NCBI GenBank assembly: GCA_040285825.1
Contig: JAUPSS010000004.1
Location: 434,001-498,000 of the forward strand
Source of the DNA: Eukaryota sp. TZLM1-RC
Taxonomy: Eukaryota > Protista > Metamonada: BaSk clade
DNA: 64,000 nucleotides
Reading direction: 5' to 3'
Shown: one piece after another, positions 17,722 to 62,662 of the stretch
Layout of the letters: each line of letters begins with the position of its first letter
Numbering within the stretch: the stretch's first letter is position 1
Translations under genes and position numbers: made by a program
Notes under the pieces: generated by a model
Seen by the model: only the letters and a program-made list of their open reading frames with translations
Databases searched by the model: none
Told to the model about the DNA's origin: nothing

Positions 17722-17734
17722 TGATGACGTGGCA
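17722..17734 (+). promoter_or_regulatory. Recurrent TGATGACGTGGCA (CRE/G-box-like) motif
   Basis: Exact 13-mer also at 18680-18692, and reversed at 35802-35814 and 56803-56815; 10-nt partial at 21497-21506. Confidence 0.55.
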
Positions 17735-17837
17735 CTTGTTCAAAAACAAGTATTTCTATTAGTAAATCTCTTTTTCTCTCTTTACTTCTTTGGTATTTCT
17801 GCCTAACGGCATCAATAATTATTGGCCCTCATTGCAG

Positions 17838-18590
17838 ATGAAATCTACACACGTACCACATCCGTCCCTTGCTTCTATGGAAGTGGATGATGTTCTGTTG
17901 TTCCTACAACAGTGGAAGGTGTACTCTTCTGTTACACCGAAAAAGGACCTTGTTCCAGCAAGGCTCCTCGTTGACCCCTTCTTGTTAGAATCATTGGTTC
18001 TCACAAGACCTGGGGTCGATTCATCCGATGAGGTGTTTCTGGATCATTTAAGATCCTCCACCTCGTTTTCCTCGTACGAGGAATTCAACTTGGTGATGTC
18101 TGAGTTGAAGGTTGATGTCCGTAAGGGCGACGTCCGTGAACGTATGTCCTGCTACCTGAGACGTTTTCTTCAGGCGAAAAGCAGGGCTTCCGGACTAAAA
18201 TTGCCTGACTCAGCCTTCATGATCAGATTCGCCAAGGGTATTCTTCCATTAGGACTGCAGAAATCTCTGATTTCTCGAATTCGGGATGAGGTATTCCCCG
18301 ATTTTCCTACATTGGTAAATACCGCAGAGGATGAACTACTTGATTGCACGCGAGTAGCTTCTTGGAACAGGTCTTCAAAGACTGTTTATGAAAATACCGA
18401 CTCTGTGCGTCAAGCTGGTATGAAGTCTCGTTCATCCCATAGGCCTCGCAATTTGACTGAAGGGACATGTTTCAAATGTCACCAGAAAGGTCATCTAGCT
18501 CGTGATTGCCCCTCAAAAGTTAAGCACGAAGTCAATCATTTACGCCACGTGCCTCAGTATCTCACAAATCCCCTTTCTTCATTATGCTAA
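17838..18590 (+). CDS. gag: Gag protein (250 aa) with CCHC zinc knuckle
   Basis: Intact ORF between the LTRs; CFKCHQKGHLARDC; capsid-like YLRRF..FAKGI. Confidence 0.9.
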   Translation: MKSTHVPHPSLASMEVDDVLLFLQQWKVYSSVTPKKDLVPARLLVDPFLLESLVLTRPGVDSSDEVFLDHLRSSTSFSSYEEFNLVMSELKVDVRKGDVRERMSCYLRRFLQAKSRASGLKLPDSAFMIRFAKGILPLGLQKSLISRIRDEVFPDFPTLVNTAEDELLDCTRVASWNRSSKTVYENTDSVRQAGMKSRSSHRPRNLTEGTCFKCHQKGHLARDCPSKVKHEVNHLRHVPQYLTNPLSSLC

Positions 18591-18979
18591 ATGGTTCACG
18601 AAACTGTTGAAAGAAAATGGGAAGAAGGAGTGTTGTTGTTACTGATTAACTATCTTGCTAGACAGATGAGGAATTTACATGATGACGTGGCACTTGTTCA
18701 AAAACAAGTATTTCTATTAATAAATCTCTTTTTCTCTCTTTACTTCTTTGGTATTTCTGCCTAACGGCATCAAGACTGCTCTTAAGTCAAGTCTGACTAA
18801 CGTATTCAGTTTCTTCTTTCTGACATGCTTTACCCAGTACCATTTTTGTTATTTTCAAGCTCATACCAAAGAACTGAATCAATCTTGGAATATTTTAGTG
18901 ATAAGGCCATTTTTTATTTTTCATCAAGAAAATGACTTCCTTGTTTGAACCAATGTGAGCAAAGGGCAATATTGGGCGA

Positions 18980-20622: not shown

Positions 20623-21584
20623 CTAACGGCATCAATAATGATTGGCCCTTCGTATTTCAGATGACTGTTCCCTCTGTCAACCACCCGTCTCTTTCTTCTA
20701 TGAAAGTTGAGAATGTTCTTTGTTCCTACAAGAGTGGAAGATCTATTCTGCTGTGACTCCTAAAAAAAAGCTTGTTCCAGCAAGGCTCTTGGTCGATTCT
20801 TTTCTGTTAGAGTCCCTATCTGTTCAGAAATCCGACGTCTCTTCCAGTGACGATGTTCTTCTTAGACATCTACAATGCGTCATATCGTTCGCCACGTACG
20901 AAGATTTTAGTCTGGCTATGCCAGAACTGAAGCTTGATGTCCGTATTGGTGACGTCCAAGAACGTATGTCTTGTTACCTGCGACGTTTCCTCCAGGTAAA
21001 GAGTAAGGCTTCCGGACTGAAGTTACCAGACACAGCTTTTCTGAATCGATTTGCCAGAGGAATTCTTCCCGTAGGTCTTCAACGTTCTCTTCTAGCGAAA
21101 ATTCGAGATGATGTATTTCCAGATCTTCACTCTCTTGTCGAAACCACTACTGATGAGCTGTTGGACTGCTCTAGGGTTGCTTCATGGACTCGTGGTTTGA
21201 AAACCTCATTTAGTGATGTGGCTGGTACTAAAACGAGGTTCTCTTGGCGCTCTCAGGATTTAAAAAATCAGTCGTGCTTCAAGTGCAACAGACCTGGACA
21301 CATCTCCCGCGATTGTCCAACTAAAAACAAACATGAGGTGAATTATGTGTGTCACACAAACGATGCACCAAAGAGGTTAACAAACCCCATATCTTCCCTC
21401 TATTGAGCCAGTACTGTATTTGTCTTCAGAAAAATGGGAAAAAGTAGTGTTGTTGTTGAACTCAAATTGAATTAGTAGGTTTCTATGTATTTCGACTGAT
21501 GACGTGATACTCATTTATGAATCAGTTTTATTAATAAACTCATATTTCTCTCTCCTTCGTGTGTTCATCTGCCTAACGTCATCA
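20623..21584 (+). mobile_element. Second, diverged Gag-only LTR element with truncated 5' LTR
   Basis: Last 12 nt of the 5' LTR (CTAACGGCATCA) at 20623-20634; PPT AAAATGGGAAAAAGTAG; 3' LTR 21448-21584 (TGTTG..CATCA). Confidence 0.9.
20661..21406 (+). pseudogene. gag: Gag with a 1-nt frameshift near 20720
   Basis: Homologous to 17838-18590 throughout; CFKCNRPGHISRDC. Confidence 0.85.
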
Positions 21585-23699: not shown

Positions 23700-24617
23700 C
23701 TATAATGAACTCAAATCCATGATGTGTGTAGCTCCGCTGTTTCAAATCAAGATCTTCACTCATTGTTATGGGAAAAGGGTATTTGTGAAAACCATTCATC
23801 AGAATTTTCACTTTTTGTAACCATTGTACCACAAAGAGTTGGACTCTGTGGGATGAATGAACCTTTTGTAACAAAAATAGAGATCATATTTGAATATCCC
23901 AATTAATCAATTATTATCAAAAGAATATTGTAATTGTTCAAATTCACCACAGCTCAATTTGTACCATGCTCTGAATCGTTTTAAATTGATAACTTATCGT
24001 TCTTCATTACACGATGCTGTTAGAAAGACTGTTTTCAATATGGCACAAATTGCAAAAATATGGTGTATCAAAGAGCCTCTGCTGAAAGAAACACTTTCTC
24101 TAAATAATTTTGGTTCTGATGATAGAGGTGATGTATATTGTGATTGGACTGATAATTCTGAAGCTATTGTTGACTTTGTCTCATGTAAAGTTGCAATTGA
24201 TACTTTGGTTCACAGAAGAAAACTTAATCCTGTGAGTGCTCTGGATTTTACAGCAAAAGAAAAACATAGAAAATATGATAAAGATATTCAAGAAGCTAAT
24301 GCTGGTAGAAATACACAGCTCGTTTTTATTGCTTTCCCATTTTCGATAATTAGAAGATTATCAGTTGAAGCAGAAACCTTTTTGAATGACTTCCACAAAA
24401 TGGTTCAAGAAAAAACAATGGAAAGATTTGATATTTGTTTATGGCGTTCTCGAATTCAATTTGCCATTATTGATAGATTACCTCGGTTTTTCAATCGAAT
24501 GAGAGGTGCTTTCGCTAGACAGCAAGTAGATCAAGATTTTGTAGAGGACAACTTGTTTCAATGATATTCGTCTCTTTAGTTATGAATTGATTTAATCAAG
24601 TGTGCTTGTTCAATAAA
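23700..24617 (+). mobile_element. Non-LTR family A 3' fragment (zinc knuckle + RLE)
   Basis: HDAVR, DDRGDVYCDW..AIVDFVSC, KEKHRKY; ends at AATAAA. Confidence 0.9.
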
Positions 24618-34179: not shown

Positions 34180-35205
34180 TATAGACTACAAGATTTTGCA
34201 CAACAAATTTGGTGTCAATATTTTCCCGACTCAGTTCAAGAGATTGCTCCACGAAATTTAGTTAAATTCAGGTATTGCGTGAATAAGCTTCAAAAATCGA
34301 CAATAATATTTGAAGGCTTGGATTATGAAGTACGTCTTGGCATGGTTAAGCAACAAAATCCCGCTTTTGCAAATTTTTTACTGGATGTTTGCGATAGTTC
34401 TGCTTCTTGTTTAATTAATCAAGTACCAAGAATTTATGGTTTGTTTCTCAATGACCCTTGCTTCTCATTATCTATGCGTCTTCGATCTTTAATTTGTCCT
34501 GATAATCTTACTCATGGATTAGTTTGTAAACATGGAAAGTCTGTCACTCCAACCCATTTAGTTGATTGTAATCAATTTATTACTTTTAGATCAAAAGTGC
34601 ATGATGTAGTTCGTGATCAGCTTTATTGTATTTTTAAATCCTCCTAGATTGAATCTTTTTCTAGAATCTTTGCTTTCAAATTTCGCTGATGAATCTGACA
34701 GAAATTCTTTTGGTGACAGCCGTGGTGATGTGCTAGTTCCCGGACTTGATGGATCAATGATCATTATTGATATCAGATCTACTGATGTATCAAACAGCTC
34801 AAATAAAAAGCTGGCACAATCTTATAACTCACCTTTACGAAGAGCCGAAGAAGCAAAAATTATTAAGTATACAGAAAACATCAAAAATCTGAATTCCAAC
34901 TCACATACTCAATACATTTATTGCCCTTTTGCTTTTTCTTTATTTGGAAGCTTGGGTAAAACTGCGCTATCTTTCTTGGATGATTTCTCATCTATTGTCA
35001 AAAATAGAACTGGAAGAATATTTGACCGAACCTTTTGGCAAAACAGAATTAGTATTTTCTATTTTTAAGGGAATGTATAGGTTTCTAGCTCGTTTTTATC
35101 ACTAGAAAAAATTTATGAAGAAAAAGCTGTAGGTAAGTTTTCTATAGTAGATGTGGAGTATGAGGAGAGTGATTTTTAGTTTTTTTTATAAATTTGTTTG
35201 AATAA
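34180..35205 (+). mobile_element. Non-LTR RLE 3' fragment, family B
   Basis: HDVVRDQLY, SRGDVLVPGLDGSMIIIDI, FWQNRI; ends at AATAAA. Confidence 0.88.
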
Positions 35206-40629: not shown

Positions 40630-41130
40630 TTTTAAGAAATTTCAAAAATTGATGTAGAAAAATGGGGTCGATGTTTTCCCCAATCATTCAATGGGAATAA
40701 TCCAGACAAGAATCTTTTAAATTTGAAGTACACTCTTCGAACATTACAGAAACGATTGACTGGAATGTATGAAAATGATCTTTATAATAATATATGCAGC
40801 TCGGCTGTTTTAAATCAAGATCTTCACTCATTGTTATTGGAAAAGGGTGTTTGTGAAAATAAGTCATCAGATTCTGCACTTTTTGTAACCATTGTACCAC
40901 GAAGATTTGGGTTGTGTGCCACTAATGAAGCATTTGTGAAAAAAAATGAGATTATATTTGAATACCCCATTAATCAATTATTATCAAAAGAAAAATGTAT
41001 TTGTTCGAATTCACCTCAACTCACTTTGCGCCATGTTCTGAATTGTTCTAAATTGATAACTTATCGTTCTTTATTACATGATGCTGTTAGAGACACTGTT
41101 TTCAATGTGGCACAAACAGCAAGAATATCG
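40630..41130 (+). mobile_element. Non-LTR family A internal fragment
   Basis: Near-identical to the reverse complement of 27855-28350. Confidence 0.9.
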
Positions 41131-42555
41131 TTCAATAACGCATCATATTTGTCTCATTTACAAACCTCAGCCTTGTCCACATGACCATTAGAACTAATTA
41201 AGACATCATCAAGGTAAAGTGAAGCAAAGAATTCAACAGTAGTAAAATCAACAACAGGGGAGGAATCCACAAAAGGAGATATTAAATCACGACGACAGGA
41301 ATCAAACAATTGATTATCACTATAAAGCAGATTTGTTCTCACTCTTCATTCTACTGTCAACTCTCACCTTTTCAATCTACTGCAGACCTTGGTGTCCAAA
41401 ATGTCATTGGTCAGTTATTGTCATTCAATGGATGAATTATATTCAGAACATTTATCAAGTTTTGCTTTAAGGTTTACAATATAGTGTTTGACAACAGTTT
41501 CAAACTTTATTCAATTGTGTGGAGTGTGCATGCATTATGAATTCTTGGATAAACGGAAAACTAAGAACCAGGGCTTTAACATAAAGAACAAGAATGATTA
41601 GACAGAAGTCAATCACTTTCAAGATAAACAGGTGATGACATGGCATCACATGATACAGTAAACTAATAACTACATATCTAATAATTCACTACAATTGGTT
41701 GCTAAAGAAATGCCGATTCATATACAAATATTGTGCTTCATCTCAATGCCAGCAAATCATTCCTGATTGGTTCTTCTCAGGATCTTGTGATAAACGATTC
41801 TGTTGTTTCTTTTACTAATTATAATAGTGATGCTTTCAAGTTTCTTGGTTACTGGGCAGGAAATGTGCCTCGAAATTCTGAAAGAATAACAAGCTTTCTT
41901 GGAAAATATGAAAATTGAACTTGATTCAATTTCTTAGATTTAGACAAACATATTAAATTTTTATGCTGAAAATTTGCTTTACTGGAAGAACAATCCACAT
42001 TTCAGGGGTCTTTTGATTTTGTTGTAACATTAGATTTTTGTCGTTCCTTTAATTCATTGAGAACAGCATTTTTTGCTGATTTATTGGTTGTAAAACCACG
42101 AAAGTTGTAAAATCACTTATTTTTATACAGCAAAATTTGTATCAATCAGTATTTTTGGGTGGAGACAGGAATTTTATATCATGAATCGTGTAATTCCTGA
42201 AGATTCTCATTTTTTAGTTTCCAGTTGCAAAACATACTTCAATGAGTTATCTTGTGAACTCGATAAATTGCCAACACACATCCGGACCAAACGTTTTTCC
42301 AAATCAATTCAAGAAACTCCAAACCGACCTCTTTTTAGTTTGCAGTTTTGCTGTAAAATGCTTCAACAAAAGTTGTCAAAGATTTTTGAAAGCTTGATTT
42401 TGGACTTTGATGGTCTTGGCTGTTGGTTATTGTTTGACATACAATGTAGAGTAACAGAAGTGTAATTTATAACGAAGAGGAATTGTATTCTCTCTTCTTA
42501 AGCTAACAGGCGGAATACTAATAACTAAACTATTAACTATAAATACTATTCAAGA

Positions 42556-45550
42556 CTAACACTGCCTTTTCCTCTCTTTCGAGCGACGAGCCCTGGAAGC
42601 TCTAGTCACAGGAGGTGAACTAATAGAATTATTACGCTTCTTGGGAGGAGCGGATTTAGTACGGCGACGTGCTTTTGAAGTCTTGATAAAGTCTTTATAC
42701 GCGGCAGTATTTTGGACTGTAGACACATGCTCAGTGGTGATCTCTTTTCCTGGCCATTGCACTTGGCAAAAGTCACCTTCCTGACTGAGCACTTTTTCAA
42801 TGATGTGTTCTTCGACATCACCTGCAGCGACCCAGGAGTGGAACTCATCGTTGGTGGGCAAGCTGGAGTGCCAGGGAGCTAAGTGTTTGACGCTAGCTTG
42901 GACAATCGTACCTGTGCAGAGATTCTTAATATTCACAGACGAATTGGATACGATTTCAGTAATTAGGAAGGGTCCTAAATAGTCTCCATGAAGCTTAGCG
43001 GAAGAGCCAGATGCTCTCAATACCAATTGACCAACTTCAAAAGGGTTTGGAGTTGACGATCTTGTTAGCTTGGAAGCTTTGGAAGCTTGATGGTGTGCTG
43101 CCTTTTCCTGTTTCTCTTTCAATCTTCGAAATTTAGATTGAATTTCTTGAATAAAAGATGACTCGGACGTCGAGCTTTCAATGATTTCAAGGATTTTGCC
43201 AGGGTCTGATCTGGGAGACACATCTGAGCCAAAGATCACTTGGTATGGAGTGTGGTTGGTTATTGAGCTCTTGGAAGAGTTGATCAATAATTGCACATAA
43301 GGCAAGTATTCAGACCACACATCGTAGGCATTGAAGTCTACGAGCAATTTCCGTAGGTTTTGCAGGATGTCTCTGTGTCGGCGCTCTACCAAGCCGTTGG
43401 ACGGAGAAAACCTAGGTATTGATTTTGACACCTCTATGCCCAAAAATTTGCTTAACTCGTCAAAGACAGCCTTGGAAAATTCGGGTCCATTATCGCTGTG
43501 GATTTGAAATGGAATACCAAAGATGGCACAGATTTTCCAAATTAATGCATCTGCAGTAAGATTGGCATTTATCTCTTTTAAAGGCACGATGATCGTGAAC
43601 CTAGAGAAGCTGTCGATAAATACGAGGATGTATTTGTAGCCTTCTTGATCTTCTGGAAGAGGACCAATGACGTCGGCGTTGACGCGAGCAAAAGGTCTGT
43701 CAGCCCACAATGAACCGGTTGGGGGGACGTGCAGTTTGGGAACTGGCTTAGTTTTCTGACAGGAGGGGCATTCTTGGACGTGCTTATTCATGTCGGTGAG
43801 CATGTTTGGCCACCAATAATCGCTGTTCCTGAGCTTGTTCAGGCTTTCAGCTTTGCTTGGATGACCTCCTTGCAGAAGTCCATGCAACAAGTTAAGGGTG
43901 TCCTTAATGAGTGATTTGGGAATCACTATCTTGTTGTCGTGAGTCATATATAAATCAAGATGATTGTTATGAACACAGTTGTTGAAAGAGGGGTCTTTGG
44001 AAGCTACGGCAAGCTTCTGTTCGGACCTAATCCTACAGAGCCATGGCTCGAAAATAGGCAGGTCGTTGGAACATCGTTCTCTGATGACCATGATACGTTC
44101 GAAGTTGTTTAAGTCTTCGATGTAGTATCTTTCATTTTCTGTTCCATCGATTTTATCAATGTAAAATATTGGATGAAAATTTGGAGGCATTTGATGGGAC
44201 AAATGATTGATCTCTTGATGGTCTATAGGCGGAACTATTCGAGACAACATATCAGCCCAGAAGTTATCTTCCCCTTTGGTATGTACCAAATCGAAGCAGA
44301 ATTCAGAGAATATGGGTAACCATCTTGTTACAATTCTGTTCTTCTCAGGAGCCGTGAACATGTAGGTAAGGTTTTGATGGTCTGTGAATATAACCAGTTT
44401 CCTTCCTTTCAAGTAGTTTTCAAAACCACTTTGAGTTAACATGAGTAGGATAGCATAGAGTTCCTTTTGGTTTGTCGGCCAGTTCTTTTGCGAGTTGGTT
44501 AACAACCGGCTGAAGAAGCTGATAGGCCTACATTTCCTGTTGATCAGGGGGGTACCGGGGTCGTCGACTTGTTCGATTTGTTCCCAAATGACGCCGCCTA
44601 CAGCAATGTCGGATGCGTCGCAACTAATTAAAATTTGGTTTTCCAGCGGAGGTAAGCTGAGTGGCATGTGCTTTGCTATCAGTTGTTTGATCTTTTGAAG
44701 GAGTCCGTCGTGCATGTCGGTCCATTGAAGGCGTTGCGCGCGGGGTTTGGGTTTAACTTTGGAGTTATTTCCAACCTTCTTAGTCAATCTGATGATGGGA
44801 GCGATGAGCTCAGATACCTGAGGAAGCCATTCTCTAATGAAGTTGACTGATCCTACGAGGCTGCGGACGTCTTTGATTGTCTTTGGTCTAGGTAGATTCA
44901 ACAAAGATTCAACGCGAGTGGGATCGATAGTCCGTTGTTTGTTTTGGAAAACACTGCCCAGTATCTTTATTGGGTGTCTGGAAGACACGAAATGGCACTT
45001 TGGAAGTCCCAAGGAAACTCTTTTGCATCTGGCTTGATCAAGGACGCGACGGAGGCGTTCAATGAATTCGTCAAAGGTTGAACCTATGATTATGATGTCA
45101 TCTATGTAAATGAAGACACCGTCTCCAGAGAAGATGTCAGCCATGACGTTTTGGAAAACGGCTGGGACATTCTTTAGGCCAAAAGCTGCACGTTTGAACA
45201 TGATGCTTTTGCCAGGAATGCTCAGGGCTGTTTTCTGCCAATCCTTTTCGGCAATCTTGAGTTGCCAAAAGGCTTTGGGGAGGTCAAGGGTGCCTATGTA
45301 GTTCGCTTGGGAGAGAAATACCAGCACATCGGAGATCCTTGGAAGGTTGGGCTCAACAGGAATGGTGTTGGCGTTGACTCCGTCCTTGCCACTATAGTCA
45401 CCGGTAAGGCGGGGCTTACGGTGATCTGGGTAGACCACTAGACAGACAGGGGAGCTGAACTCATGGTTCGATGGGACAGCAAATCCTGAGTCTACGAGTT
45501 CGTCGAAAATTTGGTTAGCGACCTCTAGCCTGGCTGGATTCAGGGTCCTG
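42556..45550 (-). CDS. pol: Pol part: RT, RNase H, integrase, GPF motif, degenerate chromodomain
   Basis: LDLPKAFWQ, FGLKN, YIDD, CDAS, TDHQNL, HHCC finger, DVIGP, SDNGPEF, NGLVER, GPF. Confidence 0.95.
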
Positions 45551-48500
45551 GGGGTCTTCTAACTCTGACGTCTTCGTTGTAGAAGTTGATTTCCATGGGA
45601 GGGCAATCAATACCTTCAGCATGAGGCTTGAGGGTAAATACGTCTTCGAACTCCTTCAAAGTTTGAAGTAGGGACTTCTTGAAATGGTCGTTGTCGAGGT
45701 TGATGGTACAACCAGATGAGTTGATGTGTTCCAACCAACGTGTGGAAACGTTGACGACTTCCGAAGCTTGTGATATTCGATGATCGAATTCAGCTTCAGG
45801 TAATAGTAATGTGCGACAGGCGTCGTCCATTCTAATATAAATGCCCTTGTTGTTCATCAGCCCAAGGTGACTCAACAAGTCAGCACCAATGAGAATGGTC
45901 TCATGTCCAGGAACGATGCTGAACTTGTGTTTCACGTGTACAATCTGGGTAACACTACCTAGTCTAATGCTAAGGGTTCCAGAAGCAGTACCAAGGGACT
46001 GTGAGGTAGTTCCATCAGCAATCTTGTATGAAATGGTTTCGTTGGAACGTGCCATGTTACAATTACTGATGACGTCTTCCGTGACTACTGAGCATGTTGC
46101 ACCAGAGTCAATTATGCCTTTAACTTCGACATTGTTGATCAAGAAGTTTAATTGTAGGCAGTTGTGATTCATGGATTGTACCATAAAAATTGTATCAGAA
46201 TCATGTCCATTTAAGTCGGCTTGTTCTGAGAAGAAGTGAGCCTGACTGTTGAGTGTCTTGGTAGGTTCCAAGTTGGCAAGTGGATTGATAAGAGAATCTT
46301 TCCATGCTGAACTTTCTGTGTGTGGTTGTGTTGTTGTTGTAGGGGGTATGGTTTCTAAAGTACATAAATAGTGACGGGAACGTTTATTGTAAGAAGAGCC
46401 TCTGCCTCTGCCGCGAGTACCTCTTCGACTACGGAAACCAGGACCTCTAGAACTTCTACCTCGAGCTTGTTGTTGAGCTTGTTGCTCTCTCCATTTCTTG
46501 CTCCTTTGGCAGTCTTCACTGGGGCACCTTTCGGTCGGATGGCCCTTTTTCTTACAGAAGTTGCATTGGACATCAGCGGCCTGGGAAGACGATTGTGGTA
46601 GGCTTCCTCCTCTCTTACTTTGTTTTGGGCGTTTACCTGGACCAGAACCTCGTGGTCTGGGGATGTCAGGTGGGGAGGGAACGACCATGGGAGGTCGGCG
46701 AGAGGCCTGCTGGTGAGTTAATTGGTTCTGATAGGTGAAATCGACATGGTTCAGTTGTTCCATGAACGATCTGGCGTTACAGAAATTCTCGTATTCAATT
46801 TGGAGAACACTAAAGAATTCGCCAAGGGTGTGCCCATCGCATGAGTAGTGGGAGGGAGAGGACCAGATCCTGAGGAGTCTGTCTCTGATAGGGATAATTT
46901 CTACGCTTTCTAAGACATGAGTAGCAACTACCCAGTCTGGAAGTCTATCAGCTGGAGGAGTGGAGCTTATGGAGAATGTTCTCAATTGTTGAGAGATGCC
47001 CCTAAATTCTTGGATGGCGGTGGAGCGAGTCAGAACTCTGCCTATGTTGACCATGAAGTCAATCCATCTATTGCCATAATCTCTTTCCGACCAGTCCATG
47101 TTGGTTGCGAGGAGAGCTCGATTAGCCTCATCCAGTCTGCTGAATTGGGTTCTTCTTAGAATTTGAGCCCAAATGATGCGTTCATCTCTTGAGGTAGGAA
47201 CCGTGGGAGAAGAGATAGCTAGGTGAGCACCTTGGTATCGTAGCGCATTTAACACCTCGGGGGTGACACATTCAGCGAGGCCTCGGGGGTTGATCCTCAT
47301 GGCTTGACGGAACAAGTCCCATTCGTGAACTGGTTCTCCAGTGATGTTACCAAAATACTCATCGATCGGTGGTTGGGAACCTTCTCTAGCTAGTTCTAAT
47401 TCTTCACGTAGTCTGGCAACTTCGTTAGCTAGAGCTATCTGGGCTGGATCCTCAACGTTACCTCTCGTTTCTCTTAAGACTCGGTCGGTACGACTCCAGA
47501 GAATGAATTTGTTGACAAACTTTAGGAGTTTATCAGCGTCTCTCAAATCACAAGCCTCAAGATATGGACGTTTAGGACGGTCCCTACGTCTGTCATCTCG
47601 GTCTCTTGATCCCATCATTGAAGAGAGGAGAAGGCTACTTTCGTATGTGCCCGAGAAAGGTGAATGATGTGAGGAAATGGAGGATGTTGAACCTGTCGTG
47701 GAAGGTGTAGGTAGGGGTTGAGGAGCTCGACTGACGGGAGTGATGGGAGCAGGTACTGCATCAGAAGATGTGGTGGGGGTGGGTGATTCACTGCTCACAG
47801 TGGCAACGTCGTCGTCAGCTTGTTCCATAGCAGATTGGTTGGGGTTAGAGGTTTCCGTGATAGGAAATGAATCAGTTTCCATAGGAGGTTGTGGTGATTC
47901 AGGAGGTTGAGCGGAGGAAGATGGAGCTTCACTCTGTTGAGGTTCAGGGGAAGGTACTGTCTCTTCAATCTGGGCTGGAACCTGATAAGAAGAGATCGCT
48001 GGTTGAACCAAGCGTGTTTTCTCTATACGGCCTTCTACCATTACCCACTTTAACATCCTGGATTCTATGCATCCAGGGAAAACGGTGACGAGCTGGAGGG
48101 CTCTTTGAAGATTACCTGATCTTCTGTGGTCAGGACCACAATATGAAGCTATATGGTCAGGACGTCTGTCGTAAAGAAAGAGTCTTTCACCATATGTGGT
48201 TTCGGTAAACCACCACCCTGTTCTATAATCTCTGTCGATAAGGATATCGAGAGATGCGTTGTACCCAGGGCTGAACCTAGGGTATGGGCAAGGGTTGTGA
48301 ACATTTATGAAGAGGTTGTCTTCATCTCCAGCGAAGCGTCTGAATACTCCTTCTCGAGTAGTTCTCATGAACCTAACTCCGGGTCTTGGTTCGTGAGTTG
48401 GTTCTGGGTCATTCCTGGAGGTTTCTGGGGTGATCCTTTCGTCGGTAAGAAATGGACCTATTCTGGGAGAGATCCATAATCCTAAGTCGTTCTCGACTTT

Positions 48501-49688
48501 GGGACCGTAGAAAGGAGGCCGTTTGTTGCTCATCTCCGTGGGAGGGATGGCTTCTGGATCCTCTGGAATGACTCGTGAGTCCCTATATCTAGCGTAAGGG
48601 TTGTGCTGACGGGAAGCACCATGATGAACACTCGAGCTAGCGTGGGAGCTAGTTTGGGAAGGGGTAAGTCGAGCAGGTGTAGAGGATGTTCCTCTTCTAG
48701 CTTCAATCTCTCTGTCCAATCTTTTTCTGTGTTCCCAGTTTCGTTCTTCTTGGAGAAAACGCTCTATATATTCTTTAGAGACCTCACCAGGAATTTTGTC
48801 AATTTCAGAAGAAGGTGCCGTGGGAGGGACCTGATGTTGAGGTAGAGGGGAGAATTCCTTGGGAGGTTCCTCGTACTCAACCAAATCTGAAAAGATTTGT
48901 TCGTACCTTTTCCTTTGCTCTTCGGAAAGAAACGAAGGAAGGTTCGAAAGGCTAGGAATGGAATCACTAGCCTGGTGAGGGGAAACAGACAGATTATTAA
49001 CTCCTCTTACTGTTGATGTAGTAAGAGGAGATCCTGAAGTTGAGACAGCAGGATTTTGGATAGTTCTCCTAACGGTTGGAACTGCAGGGAGAAGCTGTTG
49101 AGAGTGAGAGGGTGGAACCTCAGAACTGGATGGAAGGGATGAAGATGGTACTTCAATGGCCTTCTTAGAGGAGGAAGAGGGTTGGTCTTCCAATCCTTCT
49201 TTTGCAGTGAGAGAAGGTTGAACAGTCTCTCTGCTCTGAGTAGAAGGTGAAGGTGGTACTTCCGAACTTCTTCCAGGGAGGGGAGAAGGTGGGACTTCAG
49301 ATGCCCCCAATTGCGAAGGTGGAAGAGGAACAACGGAATCCTCTACGTCCTCGTCGTCGTAGGAGACCAACGAAGGACTTCTTCCTTCCGAAGGGACGGA
49401 ATCCTTGGGAGGGTTGTCTCCTTCGGCAGGAACAGAATCCTGAGGAGGGGAGCTTCCTTCCATGGGAACGGAATCCTCTGGAAGGGAATTGTCTTCCTTT
49501 GGGGTGGAACCCTCAGGGAGAGTTGCTTCAGGAAGCGCAGAAGCTTCAACCGAAGAAGGAGGCACGGAAGCAGGGTCTGTGGTTAGTGGTGAGGAAGAGG
49601 GACCAGTCTCTTCCTCAAGGATCCTACGCTGAGCCGGGGACGACCCAATACGTATTGATGGTCTTGGCTGTTGGTTATTGTTTGACAT
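45540..49688 (-). CDS. gag: Gag-protease part of the polyprotein, with very long N-terminal extension
   Basis: CNFCKKKGHPTERC knuckle; aspartic protease IIDSGAT..ILIGADLL; frame broken at the C5 run 45550-45554. Confidence 0.92.
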   Translation of the reverse strand: MSNNNQQPRPSIRIGSSPAQRRILEEETGPSSSPLTTDPASVPPSSVEASALPEATLPEGSTPKEDNSLPEDSVPMEGSSPPQDSVPAEGDNPPKDSVPSEGRSPSLVSYDDEDVEDSVVPLPPSQLGASEVPPSPLPGRSSEVPPSPSTQSRETVQPSLTAKEGLEDQPSSSSKKAIEVPSSSLPSSSEVPPSHSQQLLPAVPTVRRTIQNPAVSTSGSPLTTSTVRGVNNLSVSPHQASDSIPSLSNLPSFLSEEQRKRYEQIFSDLVEYEEPPKEFSPLPQHQVPPTAPSSEIDKIPGEVSKEYIERFLQEERNWEHRKRLDREIEARRGTSSTPARLTPSQTSSHASSSVHHGASRQHNPYARYRDSRVIPEDPEAIPPTEMSNKRPPFYGPKVENDLGLWISPRIGPFLTDERITPETSRNDPEPTHEPRPGVRFMRTTREGVFRRFAGDEDNLFINVHNPCPYPRFSPGYNASLDILIDRDYRTGWWFTETTYGERLFLYDRRPDHIASYCGPDHRRSGNLQRALQLVTVFPGCIESRMLKWVMVEGRIEKTRLVQPAISSYQVPAQIEETVPSPEPQQSEAPSSSAQPPESPQPPMETDSFPITETSNPNQSAMEQADDDVATVSSESPTPTTSSDAVPAPITPVSRAPQPLPTPSTTGSTSSISSHHSPFSGTYESSLLLSSMMGSRDRDDRRRDRPKRPYLEACDLRDADKLLKFVNKFILWSRTDRVLRETRGNVEDPAQIALANEVARLREELELAREGSQPPIDEYFGNITGEPVHEWDLFRQAMRINPRGLAECVTPEVLNALRYQGAHLAISSPTVPTSRDERIIWAQILRRTQFSRLDEANRALLATNMDWSERDYGNRWIDFMVNIGRVLTRSTAIQEFRGISQQLRTFSISSTPPADRLPDWVVATHVLESVEIIPIRDRLLRIWSSPSHYSCDGHTLGEFFSVLQIEYENFCNARSFMEQLNHVDFTYQNQLTHQQASRRPPMVVPSPPDIPRPRGSGPGKRPKQSKRGGSLPQSSSQAADVQCNFCKKKGHPTERCPSEDCQRSKKWREQQAQQQARGRSSRGPGFRSRRGTRGRGRGSSYNKRSRHYLCTLETIPPTTTTQPHTESSAWKDSLINPLANLEPTKTLNSQAHFFSEQADLNGHDSDTIFMVQSMNHNCLQLNFLINNVEVKGIIDSGATCSVVTEDVISNCNMARSNETISYKIADGTTSQSLGTASGTLSIRLGSVTQIVHVKHKFSIVPGHETILIGADLLSHLGLMNNKGIYIRMDDACRTLLLPEAEFDHRISQASEVVNVSTRWLEHINSSGCTINLDNDHFKKSLLQTLKEFEDVFTLKPHAEGIDCPPMEINFYNEDVRVRRPPGP

Positions 49689-51144
49689 ACAATGTAGAGT
49701 AACAGAAGTGTAATTTATAACGAAGAGGAATTGTATTCTCTCTTCTTAAGCTAACAGGCGGAATACTAATAACTAAACTATTAACTATAAATACTATTCA
49801 AGACTAACAACTTGACTTGGCCAAGAAAAAGAATCCCGCTTTTGCAAATCTTTTACAAGATATGTGTGACAGTACTTCTTCTGCCTTTGCAACAACAATT
49901 CCTGAAGTTTATAGTACTCTCTAACTCATTCTGCTTGGACTTTGAATATGATTTCGTTCCTTTTTCTGACCTGATAATTTACTTCATAATTGAATTTTTC
50001 AATGTTCTCAAAAAATTACCATTACTCACTTGTTAAATTGTAAACATTTTATTACTTTTTGAAGCAAGGTTCATGATGCTGTAAGAAACCAATTATACTG
50101 TATGTGTAAGTGTCATAGAATCGAATTTTTTTTGGAACTCCTGTTGTCAAATCTGTTTGATGCTGAAAATAATTTTCATCAGAACAATAGAGGTGATGTT
50201 ATATTACCTGGATTAGATGGAAGCTTCATGCTATTGGATGTAATGTCTGTTGATCCTTGTGATGACTCAAATGAAAGGCTTGCTAATTCTGAAATTCATA
50301 ATTCACTTTCACATGTTGAAAATTTCAAAATCAACAAATACAATGAACCTTTGTTCTAATTGGCCAGTCAACAGCATGCAAAATACTATTTGTATCCATT
50401 TGTGTTTTCTCTTTTTGGTTCGCTTTCTCCAACGACTATACGTTTTTTGGAAGATTTTGAAATGATTGTAAAGAGAACTTTTAACAGATTGTTGTGGCAA
50501 AATAGAATTGTGTTTCCTATTTTCAAGAAGATGTTGAAGATGTTTTCTGATGCTTTGCCTTCTTTTCGTTCTCACTATGAGGGAGAAGCATCTAGTTGTT
50601 TTGTTTATGGAGAAATGGATTATTGAGATGTTTATTTATAAGTCTTCTGATAAATAAATATAAACGAAAGAACCTATCTTATTATCTAACCTGCATTGGC
50701 CACAATCCTCCAATTGTTCATATCTAAGTGTGATGTTTCCTTTATAAGATTTGTCTGTTATAAAAAGTCAGCAATCAATGATGTTGATGCTGTATGGTTA
50801 GACATTGTACAGAATAGAGATAAAAGATGAATGTATTTATTAAATTTCACTGGCCCTTATAAAGGCCGTCACAAGTGAAGTCTATAGTAGACTAATTGTC
50901 CACAGTGCAACAATATCCTTTTTTGTTATGCTTGAACTGTGTTTCAAAAAATGTAATTTCGGTGTAGTTCCTGAAGTTGAACATCATGAAATTCCCGATG
51001 ATGTTGGGCTCTAACCATTATCCATAGATTGGAAAAATTCGATCTTTAACCAGCAGTATATGGATAGAAGTGCGGCTGGCCAAAAATGAATCTTCTTGAT
51101 TTGCACCTAATCACACTTCAAATCAATAACTCAGATCGTGCACA

Positions 51145-53099: not shown

Positions 53100-53880
53100 G
53101 AAGGTTTCGGCTATGTGCCTATAATGAGCCTTTTGTAACAAGAATGAGAACATATCTGAATATACCCATTTGCCAACTTCTATTAAAAGAAACATGTACT
53201 TGTTCTAATTCACCACAGCTCACCTTAAATCATGGTGTGAATTGTTCTAAATTGATAACCTGTCGTTCTTCATTACATGTTGCTGTTAGAGACACTGTTT
53301 TTAATATGACACGAACTGCAAGAAATTCGTGTATCAAAGCGCCTCTACTGAAAGAAACAGTGTCATTAAATAATTTTGGTTCTGATGACAGAGGTGATGT
53401 ATACTGTGATTGGATTGAGAACTCCGGAGTTGTTGTTGATTTTGTCTCCTGTAATGTTGCAAATGACACTTTAAAGGTTTAAAGAAGAAAACTTGATCCT
53501 GTAGATGCTCTTCAATTTAAGGCCAAAGAAAATCATAGAAAATATGACAAAGATATCGAAGAAGCTAATGGAAAGAAACAGACAAGTTCAAACAGTTAAG
53601 CTCAATTTATTCCTTGCCCATTGACTATAAACGGAAGACAGTCAGTAGAAACAGGATTCGTTCAAGAAACGAAGCAAAAATGAAGAGATTGGATATCATT
53701 CTAAATACAATTCGCTTTGATCAATAATTAATATCTATTAATATAATTTCTTTTATCGAATAAGAGAAACAATGGCGAGAGAAGAAGCAGATCAGGATTT
53801 TGCAGAGGAAATCTTGGTTCATTGAATTTAGTCCCATTTGTTCTGATTTAATTTTACTAAGTGTTTTGGTTCAATAAAAT
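53100..53880 (+). mobile_element. Non-LTR family A 3' remnant
   Basis: NNFGSDDRGDVYCDW; AATAAA end. Confidence 0.88.
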
Positions 53881-56160: not shown

Positions 56161-56899
56161 AAAATTAAATAGAAAAAAACAAGTTTCTTGTAGAAAAAAT
56201 CAGATGCAATTCAGGGTTCCCTCCAATTCTTACATTTTTGATAGGATGCTCGGCGTAATTTAGATCTTCCTCTGTATATGACGATCAAACAAAAATTAAA
56301 ACAGCAACAGCACAATACGCGTACAGGTACACAATCCATGAAATAACAGTCATGTGGAAGGTCTCCGAAATGGTTCTGGTCTTTCATTGAGGAAATGTTG
56401 ACTTATTACTATCTCAAGCTGATTCCTGGAGTCCCTCGACCACATTATCTGACATTCAAGGAAAATAAACTTATCGTTATTCACCTTTCCATAATCATGG
56501 TGAACCTTCTTGTGGAAAATCTTACACCAATTGACTTTGGCTGAGTTCGTATACTCATCCCCGATCTGTGGCATTTTCAAAGTGTTTTTGAATCTATTTC
56601 AAAAATCTCTGTCTTCGTGATTTGATAGATTTGCGCAGATGACCACTGTCACCTGTTCCAAACCAAATTGTCGTTTCTCTCTTGAGTCTAGTACAATACA
56701 TGATGTTGAAATCACCTGATTTTCACTCTTTAGAATTCCGACAATTCTCATTGTTGGCTCCTCGCCATAGTTAGTTGTTTGTCTTTTACAGTAATCACGT
56801 GATGCCACGTCATCACGTATTTATCTAGATTGTTGTTTTATTTCATTTGATTATTTCCACCTTTGTAATAAACACCCCGTCTTCCTGTTTATTACCTCG

Positions 56900-59800
56900 A
56901 TGCATCTCCATACTAACCCAACAGTAATTACTGTGGCCCATAAGAGTAATCCAAGCCTGGTCGCTCCAATCCTACGCAATGCTGACCGCACTTCCTGTGC
57001 TCGCTTTGCCAAAGAATTGCGTGACTTCGCTATCCGTATGTTCCTGTCCCGCCCCGTCTCTTCAACTAATGTTCAGCTTTCCCGACGTAGCTTTCGTTCC
57101 TCTCGCCGCTCTACTCGCCGCGAAGAACCCGTCGAAGTAGCTCTGCCCGACGAAGAATCCAATCCCGTCGAAGAAAACCCTGAAGAAGAAGTAAACCCTG
57201 AAGACGTCCAATACAATCTCTACGATTCTATTGATGAAGCCCCCGAACCGGAATCTCTTGACTTGTTCTCCGAAGATGATGAGAACCCAGAAAACCTGTA
57301 TGAGCTTGTGGATGCTCATAACCCTGTTGCTGACGCTGAAGCCCTGATGTTACAATACATCCCTAGATGTATCGCCCCTGAAGTTCTCGATACATTCCTA
57401 ATAATCCACCAGATTTCCCCTAGAAAACCCAAGAAGATTCTTAAATATATCCTGTCCTGTACCAAGATAGAGGATACAGCCCAAGCCTACAAGCTGTATG
57501 ACCGTGTAACCCTGAACTTAAACTGCCGAGATGCTGAAGAGGCCATTTCGAAGTATACCCGTGACTTTATGAGAGTAACCCGGTAGACCCCTACTCTGCA
57601 GAGCAATAGCCAAGCTCTTACCCGTAAATTCCTGAATGGAATCCGTCCTGAACCTTTGAGAAGGTTATTGAAGTCTGAAGCAGAAGACTTCCTTATCTCC
57701 TCTATCCCCGAAATCCTAAAGCGTTTAACCGATCTCTTGGCTGAATATCATAGACCTTATTCCAAACATTACCAGCTATTTGAAGATAGACTAGCTAACA
57801 AGTATTCTGGAAATCCTAATCGAAGAAGGAATAACCAAAGGTCCCGAAGAACTCCTATTAGGAGGTATGTAACTCCGAACCAAGAACCACGAAGCACTGG
57901 AAGTAATGCTTCCCGATCTACTCAACCGCAAGCCCGTACTGATCATTCTAGCAAATTTCCCCTTTCTGAGACCATTTGTAACTATTGCAAGAAACCCGGA
58001 CATGTAGTCCGCGATTGCCCTGACCCAAACTGCAAATTGAGCCAAGTTAACAAGAAGAAACCTTATAAGAATCCAAAGAACCCTACTCACTTTAGAACTC
58101 ATTCTACCCGTAATAAGACTCAATCGAATTCTATTGTCGAATCCATTAAGGAAGGATTGAAAGAAGACTACTCGATCGACGAAACTTATTATTTTTGTAC
58201 TGTAACCCACTCCAGCTCATCTGACACTGAAGATTTAGCTTATAGCGTATCATTAAACCCTCTTTCAATAAACTCTGATAGCTACGCTGAAGACACTTCA
58301 ACCTCTCCTAGCCTTAATACCTTTCTCTCCGACTCCAACTGCTATGATCTGGACGATGTGTTTGAAAATCTAGATTTTATCCTCCCTGGCCGAGATTTCC
58401 CCTCATTTGAAGACTCAACGTATGTTGAACCTAACAAACCACAGGTTGCCAAGCAGAAGACACCCTCTTTTCCTGCTCGTTGTGCTAGAAACAAAGTACT
58501 GAAATCTACTCGGGCAGCCGCGATGCAGGACGAAAGGGTGAGCTCCTGTGAAGCTTCTGTCGTTAAAAAGGTAACTGATTCTTCACTAACTTCCAGTGAT
58601 TCTTTAGAGACTGATTTGCCTCAGATACATGACCAGAGGAAAGCCCTGAGGGATAACATCCATGATTTCTCGTTGGAGAGAGCAAGTTCTCACCTCGATT
58701 CTGATATGGCCCTCCTGGACGCTGACTGTGCACAACGACCTGGTCCATCTGATAAAAACTCATCTCTCGAAGAATCTTCTGAAAGTTCTATAACTGAATC
58801 TGCAAATACGTTAGTCGCAGCTAAAATCTCCGCCTCTGCTCCTGCCTGTCTAATAATCCCTGATAAGTCTAAGATCTCTTTCAGGCTGAAAGAACTGAAT
58901 CAACCTATGGACAAAAACTTGTTACACCTGAAGATATTTACCAAACCTGATCACTTTCTGTATGGTATGGTTGACACTGGAGCAACCGTATCCTGTATTT
59001 CCGAAGAACTCGCTGAAGTAGCCAAGCTCCACATTGAGAACCAAACCACCTCTTTAAGTTTAGCGGATGGAAAGCTAATTGATGTTAAGCTAGCCAAAGG
59101 AAGATTTGCCTTCATGTTAGGAGGAACCGCTAAACTAACCTATGTAACCTTGAGACTCTGTCTATTACCCTGTCCCAACAACTTTATTCTCGGTTGTGAC
59201 GCCCTGAAAAGCCTTGGTTTATTCACTGAAGATTTTCTGATTATTAATCTTTCAACCCACAACTTACAGATTCAAGAAGATGAATCTATTCCTGACTGTT
59301 TCCTACCTGATTCCCAGAACGTTTGCTCTCACGATGACCTATCTGATACCTCGACTGCCCCTGAATTCGTCCAAGCTTTAAGTGACGAACTATTAAAGAA
59401 GTTACCTGACATTGAGAAAACCAGCTTCAATCTCAATGATACTGCCCTGTCCGTAGAAGTTAAGAAACTACTGCTTAAGTTCCCTGATATTTTTGCTAAA
59501 CTACCCGCTCCTGAAGGAATAAAATGTGAACCAATGAAGTTAGAATTCTATGATGAATCCTCAATCGTTAGTAAGAAAGCAAGATTCTTACCACCAGACA
59601 AGCTAAAGATTGCTAATGAAGAAATTGATACCCTACTGAAGAACGGCGTTGCTGTCCCATATGATGGTTCATTCGCCTCACCAATCCATCTTGTTTGTGC
59701 CCCTGGCAAGGCACCACGATTAACAGGAGATTATTCAGGACACAAAGGTATTAACGATCTAACCATCCCTGTCCCTGCTGACTTACCAAGAATTACAGAT

Positions 59801-62662
59801 GTCTGTGCCTTCCTGTCTTCCGCCACCTATGTCGCAACTCTAGATCTCCCCAAAGCCTTCTGGCAATTGAATCTACGACCAGAGGATCAACCCAAGACTG
59901 CCATCGTTATACCTGGAAGGAAGGTAATGTTTACCCGTGCCGCTTTCGGTTTAAAGAATGTACCAGCCATCTTCCAAAACTTAATGAGAAAAATATTCGA
60001 TTGTGACGAAGTTTTTATCTATCTCGACGATATAATCGTAGCTGCTGAAAACAAAACAGATTTCTTGAACCGCCTAGAGTATATATTTATGAGAGCCCGA
60101 GACTACTGTGTCCGAATTGGCCTTCACAAGTGCGCCTTTCAGACCAAAGACTACCCAATTCGTGTATTAGGAACTATTTTCGAGAAAGGAACTCGAAGAA
60201 TCTGCCCCTCTAGAATAGTAAAGCTGAATAAAATTCCAATCCCAACTTCCGTCCCAGAACTACGATCTTTTGTAGGTGCAATCAACTTCGTTCGAGATTG
60301 GTTACCCGCAGTAAGCACTGAACTCGCCCCGCTCACTGAACTGCTGAAAGGATCTCCCCGCAAGATACTCTTGAACCAACAACAGATTGAATGCTTTCAG
60401 AATATTAAGAAGTTGATATCAAATAGCGTGCCACTAGAGCTTCCCGATGATACTTCTCAAATATTAGTCTCTACTGATGCTTCAGAGAAAGGCATCGCCG
60501 GCATTATCTGGAAAGAACTTTCCCCTTCCGAACCTGGAACCTGTCTTTCAGAAAGAAATTTAGCCCCTCTATCTTTTTATTCCAGGATTCTCACCCCTTC
60601 CCAGCAACGATGGTCTACTTTACAGAAGGAATTATTCGCCATCGTAATGACCTTGAACCAGCCAAACCTGTCGTCTTTCTTGCAAACTAAGCACCTCACT
60701 TTGTTTTGCGATCACAAAAATTTGTCCTACCTATTCTCTTGCCCTGACTCCAACCGTGTAGTTCTCCGCTGGATCCCTGTATTGCAGTCCTTCTCATTTG
60801 ATTGTGTACACGTAAACGGACCAAATAATCATTGGGCTGATTATTTATCGCGGTCACTCCCTAAGAAAGAAGAAAAACCTGAAAAGAAGAAAACGAAGAC
60901 CAGAAGTGCTAAAGCAAGTGCGAAGGTAAACTCCTTGATCTCTATCGAAGACGGGAAGACCCCCTTCTACCAAGTTACCAGTTATGATCCTGAAGAACAC
61001 TACAGAGGACTCCCGGCTAGATTACGAACTGCTTCCTACCTAGAGGTGGCTTCATATTATAACCCAGATTGTCGCTCCTTACCTTGTCCATGTCAAGCCG
61101 GACATGGTTTCCACTATTGCCCTGGCGAGGTACGTTTCTGTGAAGTTGTTAACGATAAATATTATACTGAAGTAGGAAACCGTAACCCTGACACCATGCT
61201 TACCCATATCAAGGAACCAGTATCACCAATCATAGTCAATATCAATGTTTCACAAGCCGTTATCCCCATTGTCCCGATCCCTCTTATCTGTTATGACGCT
61301 AAGACCCTTCTATACCCTCCAAACTTGATCTTCCCCTTTTCTCCAATCGGAACCTATTTCAACTTCCATGCCATTGACACTCCACCTTCATGGTATTCCC
61401 TTAATCGTCGCGACGCCAGAAGACTCTTGACTGCTACCGCCCGTCGTTCCGAATCAGACCCATTCGCCATTCTTAACTCCCTGGAACATTTTTCTTCACT
61501 CGATCGTAGGGACATCGATAACATTCAAAATGGATCCTCTCCTTATCATTTTATTCTCTCTACTGACATATGCTTTATTTATCAACATGTGTTTCCTCTT
61601 TCCAAGTCAAAAGATCCTTACGCCTCTGTCGCTCATATGCACCCTGATACCCCAATTCATCCAAAGATCCATAATCGTTCTATTCCGATAGCCGATATCA
61701 TCCAACATGGAAACTGGAATAACCGCCTTTATTTTTATGACCCAACTCTCCCTGCTCGCTCTTATCTCCCTGAAGTGATTCCGCCTAATGCTTTCTTCAT
61801 AAAACTTAATTGCTTCCCTGCCTGTGTAACCTTAGGACAGTTAATTAACAATATCGACCCCCTGCATCTAGCTCCCCTGCCACTCGAGATGATTCCCTAT
61901 ACTCCTGATCACGCCTCCGATATCTCCTTTAACCTAGAAACCTTATTTGTTAATGACGATTTATATAAACTCACCGAGAATGATATCCTGACATTACCTA
62001 TTAACGAATTCTTAAGATTTGGAATCTTGAATCCCAGCCAACGAAGTTCAATTCCTCTCTCTAGGTATAGCCTCCAATTCTACGACGAAATCTACGAAGA
62101 AGTCTTGTATTCTCCTTTCCTCAGCTCCCGATCCTGGTGCGACGCCGATATAGAACATGAACTAGAAATGCAAGATTTGATAGGAGATGAAAACGCCGGA
62201 TCATCCATCCCCTGTTATATCCCTCCTCCTATTTTTGGTGCCGCCGTTAACTCTCACCGACTGCTACAGCTTCATAACTTTTCCTCCGAGTTCATTCCCG
62301 ACTATCTAATGTACCCTTTATTTGTTTACATCTATCATTATTGTGATGATGGTAATGCGTGCCCCCATCCCGTGGTGACTTACCAATATTCTTACAAAGA
62401 AGTGGAAAATAGTTCTATTCCAAAACAACTACTTACTCCCGTCCCTCGAAATTTTTACCTTTCTTCGAAACTCAACTCATGCAATACCTGCCCACACGTA
62501 GATAGTATTCTCAGATCCTTGCTAGACGAACTCTCGTTAGCTAATTACATACGAACAACCAAGCCTTTAGACACCATACCCTATAACTTTAAGATCGCTT
62601 TCTATGATAAAGAACTCCAAGCCGTAGTCCTCTTCCAGACAGCTCCCCGACGGAACTTATAG
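56900..62662 (+). CDS. gag-pol: Gag-Pol polyprotein (in-frame TAG at 57584-57586) with knuckle, protease, RT, RNase H and a large unknown domain
   Basis: ORFs 56900 and 57656 share a frame; CNYCKKPGHVVRDC, VDTGAT, LDLPKAFWQ, YLDD, TDAS, CDHKNL, WADYLSR. Confidence 0.92.

Follow-up and report, generated by a model that had tools for sequence, protein, structure and literature searches.

In this study, we found that a short palindrome stands at the position of the primer-binding site in four Ty3/gypsy retrotransposons, named A to D, each bounded by long terminal repeats (LTRs). The elements lie in a 64,000-nt stretch of the genome of Eukaryota sp. TZLM1-RC (contig JAUPSS010000004.1, positions 434,001 to 498,000), hereafter the window. 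Priming of reverse transcription is among the steps that define the life cycle of retroelements and, to our knowledge, only priming by tRNA (whole or half) and self-priming of the Tf1 type are understood. That the palindrome replaces the tRNA primer-binding site is well supported by the sequence comparisons described below. Moreover, its features suggest that two copies of the element RNA pair at the palindrome and prime each other. On balance, we lean towards a tRNA-independent priming site that would be used through the pairing of two element RNAs. The observations behind this reading are the position and register of the palindrome, its covariation, the absence of the known alternatives and the kinship of the elements to Tf1-type self-primers.

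The junction palindrome and its register

In all four elements of the window, the terminal CA of the 5' LTR opens a sequence of the form CA-N8-TG. Three of these junctions are perfect palindromes, and the fourth, in the decayed element C, has one mismatch. The palindrome of element A, CAATACGTATTG, occupies positions 49646-49657 on the minus strand within the gag frame, and the 5' LTR contributes its first two bases (49657-49656), the terminal CA. On the plus strand, element B carries CAATAATTATTG at 17813-17824, which again starts from the terminal CA and is followed by the gag ATG 14 nt downstream. Element D has the 14-nt palindrome ACAGTAATTACTGT at 56921-56934 (plus strand; LTR end at 56923), inside an open frame that starts at the ATG at 56900. 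The junction of element C, CAATAATGATTG at 20633-20644 on the plus strand, has one broken pair. The LTR ends of A and B are independently fixed by their LTR pairs and 4-bp target duplications, and the terminal CA is exactly where the palindrome begins in both elements. What follows the CA, N8-TG, is internal sequence, as the 3' LTRs of A and B run into flanking DNA instead. The LTR end of D is inferred from one LTR, and those of two related elements, L004 and L090, end alike (..CCAACA). A preliminary description of this DNA had reported the four junctions and had taken the terminal CA as the first two bases of the palindrome. All four sequences were recovered where it had placed them, and the second point is now settled for A and B.

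Palindromes as such are not enriched in the window, which contains 26 perfect 12-nt palindromes as compared to about 20 in shuffled sequences. Only three of the 26 start with CA, and all three are located at LTR junctions. Since the total is ordinary, the significance of the junction palindromes rests on their position and register, and not on their number. Despite this ordinary count, the register and the covariation documented below led us to reject a chance origin.

To follow the junction in other genomes, we retrieved pol relatives together with their DNA, and a metagenome scan added environmental Ty3/gypsy loci (all numbered with the prefix L). Seven more elements from three Skoliomonas genomes carry a junction palindrome, which is perfect in six of them, and all seven are flanked by 4-bp target duplications. 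From Skoliomonas GEM-RC, L001 shows the junction CAATGATCATTG between LTRs of 93-94 bp that are 100% identical, and L006 shows CAATTATAATTG and, at a second junction in the locus, CAATAATTATTG. L002, from Skoliomonas TZLM3-RCL, has the junction of element A (CAATACGTATTG). Four loci come from TZLM1-RC itself, namely L004 (ACAGTACGTACTGT), L005 (AACAATGAATTCATTGTT, of the form CA-N10-TG and 18 nt in total), L090 (ACAGTAATTACTGT) and L089, whose junction reads CA, TTAATTAA, AG (L089:8792-8935; LTRs 100% identical; target duplication GAGG). L089 stands for the largest pol protein cluster of the search, with 71 member sequences. We took an LTR end as fixed when an LTR pair with a 4-bp target duplication defined it, or when a relative had the same LTR end. 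In nine Skoliomonas junctions fixed in this way a perfect palindrome starts exactly from the terminal CA, and L089, the tenth, is the exception. A coding constraint was considered as the origin of the palindromes and rejected, because their reading frame differs among A/L002, L001 and D/L004, and that of B precedes the first gag ATG.

Outside Skoliomonas, an element of Carpediemonas membranifera (L008) has AAGTAATTACTT directly after the CA, with identical 89-bp LTRs and the target duplication ACGT. L007 derives from a sediment metagenome in which Asgard archaea are present as well; it has the junction ACAGTAATTACTGT, and its pol, with a chromodomain, is 35% identical to that of A. Two further metagenome contigs carry AGTAATATTACT one base after the CA (L022) and AAAGAATTCTTT, which includes the terminal A of the LTR (L050). 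The LTR end is not fixed in L003, a contig without a 3' LTR, nor in L014, L027 and L054. Judging from these sequences, the junction palindrome is conserved across metamonads and in unidentified eukaryotes, in registers from -2 to +1 relative to the base after CA. It is kept in the young copies A, L001, L006 and L008, which have 100% identical LTRs, and in the gag-only element B; the broken pair is found in the decayed copy C.

Covariation and the known routes of priming

Eight different cores occur in the Skoliomonas register: ATACGTAT, ATAATTAT, GTAATTAC, ATGATCAT, GTACGTAC, ATTATAAT, GTGATCAC and ATGAATTCAT. We aligned eleven junctions of the 12-nt class and compared them with 500 shuffles. 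The two halves are paired in 97% of the alignment cells, and none of the 500 shuffles reached the observed values. Changes on both sides were found in three of the six pairs (A-T/G-C; A-T/G-C/T-A; A-T/C-G), and one-sided changes in none. When the partner was slid by one to three columns, pairing dropped to 22-53%. The only two unpaired cells belong to the decayed copy C and to L003. The preliminary description had suspected compensatory change between families and had proposed to look for it in relatives; the eleven junctions bear this out, as compensating changes are the only ones present.

Palindromes are typical of sites bound by dimeric proteins, and cores such as TAATTA resemble homeodomain-type sites. 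The junction could hence be a DNA-level site for a transcription factor, the integrase or another element protein, or have some other function unrelated to priming. However, its half-sites change together, giving at least eight cores, which is the signature of base pairing and not of one protein specificity, and such a site would leave the fixed register to the LTR end unexplained. We consider this explanation very unlikely.

The four central nucleotides are self-complementary in all junctions (ACGT, AATT, GATC, TATA or ATAT). Such a centre is not needed for a hairpin formed by a single molecule, and it fits pairing between two molecules instead. In agreement with this, predicted energies range from 0 to -4.7 kcal/mol for one-molecule hairpins and from -9.6 to -21.5 kcal/mol for homodimers. 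The homodimers fall in the same range as the primer duplexes of Tf1-type control elements (-5.7 to -16.4 kcal/mol). A primer supplied by the host could not follow the differences in the site between families, and this implies a primer that the element itself encodes.

On the other hand, a host tRNA might prime at a TGG located at or after the palindrome end, with the 8-10 extra bases trimmed later and the palindrome being incidental or accessory. A TGG overlaps or follows the palindrome end in A, B, C, D, L002, L004, L006b and L090, and in several cases it is part of a 7-nt TGGCC[CT]T. However, in line with the preliminary description, which had found the first TGG at some distance from the LTR, no element has a TGG within 8 nt of it. 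Moreover, TGG is absent after the palindrome in L001, L005, L006a, L007, L089, the Carpediemonas element, L022 and L050. Beyond 7 nt the sequences diverge, even between B and C of the same family, and the stretch is part of a coding region in A, D, L002 and L004. If synthesis were primed 8-10 nt downstream, as many extra bases would also be left past the CA; the integrases known to us trim about 2. Finally, tRNA priming does not explain the covarying palindrome, and we regard it as highly improbable in these elements.

In elements of the Tf1/sushi type (Tf1 of Schizosaccharomyces pombe, Tj1 and the Tcn1 clade), a site of about 11 nt pairs with an LTR-encoded segment, the beginning of the transcript (PMC4600332, PMC6317226). 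An LTR complement of this kind was no better than in shuffles in nine palindromic elements and was absent in two more. Element D has a 10-nt run including G-T pairs (p ~0.03), which lies upstream of promoter-like motifs, and no such run was seen on reading the LTR of L090, which shares the palindrome of D. By contrast, the same script recovered perfect LTR complements of 11-13 nt, 2 nt after the CA, in seven loci (L013, L038, L044, L047, L058, L065 and L072), and these were equalled by at most 1 of 200 shuffles. The seven loci are environmental Ty3/gypsy elements of unidentified hosts with the textbook Tf1-type signature. The negative result is meaningful because the same test finds the published Tf1/Tj1 arrangement in these controls, and a Tf1-type complement was rejected for the palindromic elements. 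The preliminary description, too, had seen no such complement in the LTRs. Thus, although the nearest metagenome relatives have exactly this arrangement and group beside the palindromic elements, classical self-priming within one molecule, in which the first ~11 nt of the transcript fold onto the site, is hardly credible here.

The kinship to Tf1-type elements is apparent in the pol tree, a quick IQ-TREE reconstruction (LG+G4) from 27 trimmed pol sequences and 771 columns, with which FastTree agrees. Two sequences, P0012 and P0015, carry no primer-type label in the IQ-TREE tree. Tf1-type self-primers form one clade with 100% support. Palindromic elements occupy the remainder: the Skoliomonas elements with L003 and L007 in one clade (100%), Carpediemonas, L050 with L016, L014 and L027, and L022/L031, the last pair being sister to the Tf1-type clade with 97% support. 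In this small unrooted tree the palindromic elements lie beside the Tf1-type clade and not inside it, and a single change of primer type suffices to account for the distribution. Both groups lack a tRNA site and carry a short element-encoded sequence at the 5' LTR with duplex energies in the same range. They differ in that the palindromic site pairs only with itself and overlaps the terminal CA of the LTR, whereas the Tf1 site pairs with the LTR-encoded transcript end and, in elements of that type, starts 2 nt after the CA.

A proposed priming by paired element RNAs

Minus-strand DNA synthesis sets the end of U5 by where it starts, which requires the primer to pair inside the palindrome or next to it. 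The element contains no complement to the site other than the site itself, so the partner would be another copy of it, carried by a second RNA. Dimer-mediated self-priming, as put forward in the preliminary description, is on sequence grounds the best model. The site takes the form, in Skoliomonas, of 12-18 perfectly self-complementary nucleotides from the terminal CA of the 5' LTR. The palindromes of two co-packaged transcripts would form a short RNA duplex, and one strand would be cut inside the duplex or at its edge, much as RNase H cleaves an RNA duplex to produce the primer of Tf1. The new 3'-OH would then be extended on the partner RNA, and minus-strand DNA would begin at the LTR end. 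We thus infer a duplex in the particles, its cutting, the place of the cut, the enzyme responsible and priming by the cut end. A paper by Haag et al. (2000; cited in PMC7235257) reports, according to its title, priming of Tf1 in trans, between mRNAs packaged together.

With the register seen in Skoliomonas, DNA extended from a 3'-OH after N8 would begin with TG, opposite the terminal CA. The cut between N8 and UG that the preliminary description had proposed fits this register, but it cannot be universal given the registers of Carpediemonas, L089, L022 and L050; in Carpediemonas and L089, the 3'-OH would need to be at the palindrome end. Its broader interpretation is partly supported. The replacement of the tRNA site is supported by position, covariation, the lack of a Tf1 complement and the lack of a conserved tRNA-like sequence, whereas priming by the paired site and the cut of one strand belong to the proposed model.

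The main competing explanation is that the palindrome acts only as a signal for dimer initiation or packaging, and that an unrecognised primer (another RNA, a bipartite site or some other mechanism) is used. Self-complementary sequences of the 5' region able to pair two genomic RNAs are known from the dimer initiation site in SL1 of HIV-1 and from the PAL sequences of Ty1 (PMC3592414). Perfect palindromes with self-complementary centres are typical of dimer initiation sites, the predicted preference for intermolecular pairing over hairpins fits this function, and it fits as well without any 3'-OH made at the palindrome. However, known dimer sites are located downstream of, and in addition to, a separate primer site, without a fixed register to the LTR end. 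The palindrome of the elements studied here instead takes the place of the primer site and, in all lineages, starts at the terminal CA or at most one base from it; the sequence beside the LTR offers no second conserved candidate for a primer site. The HIV-1 palindrome also differs in lying within a hairpin loop. We judge a pure dimerisation or packaging signal to be unlikely. A link between RNA dimerisation and the primer complex is also a feature of Ty3, where paired initiator tRNAs at a bipartite primer site bridge two RNAs. Ty3 requires the initiator tRNA, and no tRNA-like site was found in the elements considered here.

Several points weigh against priming by paired element RNAs. The register of the palindrome varies by lineage (-2, -1, 0 or +1 relative to the base after CA) and, because of these differences, no single cut rule fits all elements. 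L089 has only an 8-nt all-A/T perfect core after the CA or, alternatively, a 12-mer with an A.A mismatch. Its predicted dimer energy is only -3.8 kcal/mol, and how an 8-bp all-A/U duplex would suffice in this element is a problem. Young copies without the palindrome had been named in the preliminary description as one observation that would overturn its model; A, L001, L006 and L008 retain the palindrome, but L089, with identical LTRs, retains only the 8-nt core. Moreover, a long primer spanning R and U5 would leave the termination of plus-strand strong-stop DNA as an unsolved problem. ARAGORN detected no tRNA gene in the window or in L001-L008, so the TGGCC[CT]T motif stands without a host tRNA for comparison. 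Finally, the sequences of the pol tree were picked by similarity to A, and the tree includes neither a tRNA-primed outgroup nor named reference elements.

If two element RNAs do prime each other, the plus-strand copy of the primer would carry the mirror image of any half-site mutation. Repair of the resulting heteroduplex could give a symmetric double mutant, which would account for the absence of cores with incomplete compensation.

The elements and the wider significance of the palindrome

The source strain TZLM1-RC is Skoliomonas litria, a free-living anaerobic metamonad of soda lakes, and the pol of element A is 91-98% identical to 'Eukaryota sp. TZLM1-RC' proteins. The elements of the window are compact Ty3/gypsy LTR retrotransposons of this organism, with direct TG..CA LTRs, a target duplication and a polypurine tract in A and B and, in A, the integrase after RNase H. 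The Pfam order protease, reverse transcriptase (RT), RNase H and integrase is complete in element A, which is on the minus strand. Its 154-bp LTRs (5' LTR 49656-49809, 3' LTR 42408-42561) are 100% identical, and the element is complete and young. The 5' LTR runs from TG to CA, has a TATA-like box and contains the gag ATG (49688-49686), while the pol stop lies in the first bases of the 3' LTR. Coding sequence extends over 42556-49688, with an open reading frame (ORF) for gag and protease at 45540-49688 and another for RT, RNase H and integrase at 42556-45438. A polypurine tract (42562-42585) immediately precedes the 3' LTR as read on the element strand, and the target duplication ACTT is found at 42404-42407 and 49810-49813. 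Element A is inserted in a member of another dispersed repeat family (42380-42407 and 49810-49860; compare 11579-11665 and 34291-34377) with the motif ATCCCGCTTTTGCAAAT, and sequencing-run contigs hold sequence related to this repeat in which the insertion is absent.

Element B (17673-18772, plus strand) is complete at 1.1 kb and codes for Gag only; it is non-autonomous and must be mobilised in trans. It has 142-bp LTRs (17673-17814 and 18631-18772) that are 99% identical, the target duplication AGAC and a polypurine tract at 18619-18630. Element C belongs to the B family (~73-79% identical to B) and has lost its 5' LTR almost wholly. Element D starts at ~56.7 kb and extends past the window edge; its coding part on the plus strand (56900-62662) comprises gag (56900-57586) and an ORF at 57656-62662 in which Pfam protease, RT and RNase H domains were found before the window end. 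A fifth fragment, of the A family and without a 5' end, occupies positions 1-1896. Contigs of four DNA sequencing runs indicate a multi-copy family, and a second organism has the same family too.

Otherwise unrelated LTR families have a U3 motif in common, GATGACGTGGC, which is present in the window at 17723-17733 and, reverse-complemented in D, at 56804-56814. Shorter versions occur in the LTRs of L005 (GATGACGTG) and L001 (ACGTGGC). A TATA-like box follows the motif after ~10-30 nt, and the motif probably serves these families as a shared promoter or enhancer element. Another repeat family has three copies in the window that are 78-87% identical (23719-24587, 40787-41131 and 53146-53848). 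Among the metagenome loci, L023:1-10603 contains two complete L022-type elements in tandem with a common LTR, in which 5.48 kb are repeated at 99.9%. In L014 (7201-7264; contig Ga0209086_10008138), the contig end is a perfect 64-nt fold-back centred on the junction palindrome ATTAATTCGAATTAAT, in the order LTR end, palindrome and reverse complement of the LTR end. This arrangement could correspond to one strand extended on its partner via the palindrome and, equally, to an assembly or library artefact at a palindrome.

The one published precedent found for a palindromic primer site is the Conserved Hairpin Site of the fungal GalEa Copia elements, a short palindrome that takes in the final base of the 5' LTR and stands in for the tRNA site (Donnart et al. 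2017, PMC5445492); our phrase searches for such sites in the literature returned this paper only. In GalEa, a second complementary 9-mer located 12-41 nt downstream gives rise to a hairpin in which an A/A mismatch is conserved, U5 contains no complement, and the mechanism is unexplained (PMC5445492). The A.A mismatch of L089 recalls the one conserved in GalEa. As in GalEa, the palindromes described here include the last base or bases of the 5' LTR at the primer-site position, have similar cores (TGATCA, TAATTA) and lack a complement in U5 or the LTR. Unlike GalEa, whose Copia integrase precedes RT, our elements are Ty3/gypsy elements with the integrase after RNase H. A second hairpin arm of the GalEa type was rejected as well, since no downstream partner was better than shuffles in nine elements.

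A covarying palindrome exactly at the end of the LTR, shared by many families and by several protist lineages, suggests another way of priming, without a host RNA. More tentatively, and with some doubt, we propose a third general way to start minus-strand synthesis besides tRNA and the fold-back of the Tf1 type. Two genomic RNAs would pair at a palindrome on the U5 boundary, and one would prime the other, or each its partner, coupling dimerisation to initiation. This route may have an ancient origin and a wide distribution among protist Ty3/gypsy elements (Skoliomonas, Carpediemonas and uncultured marine and sediment eukaryotes), adjacent to Tf1-type priming and convergent in fungal Copia. Annotation tools that require a tRNA-type primer site are expected to handle such elements poorly. 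The model is directly testable with the young complete elements, A and the gag-only B, in culturable Skoliomonas strains. If true, it may tie genome dimerisation to the initiation of reverse transcription, and would explain the hairpin site of GalEa.

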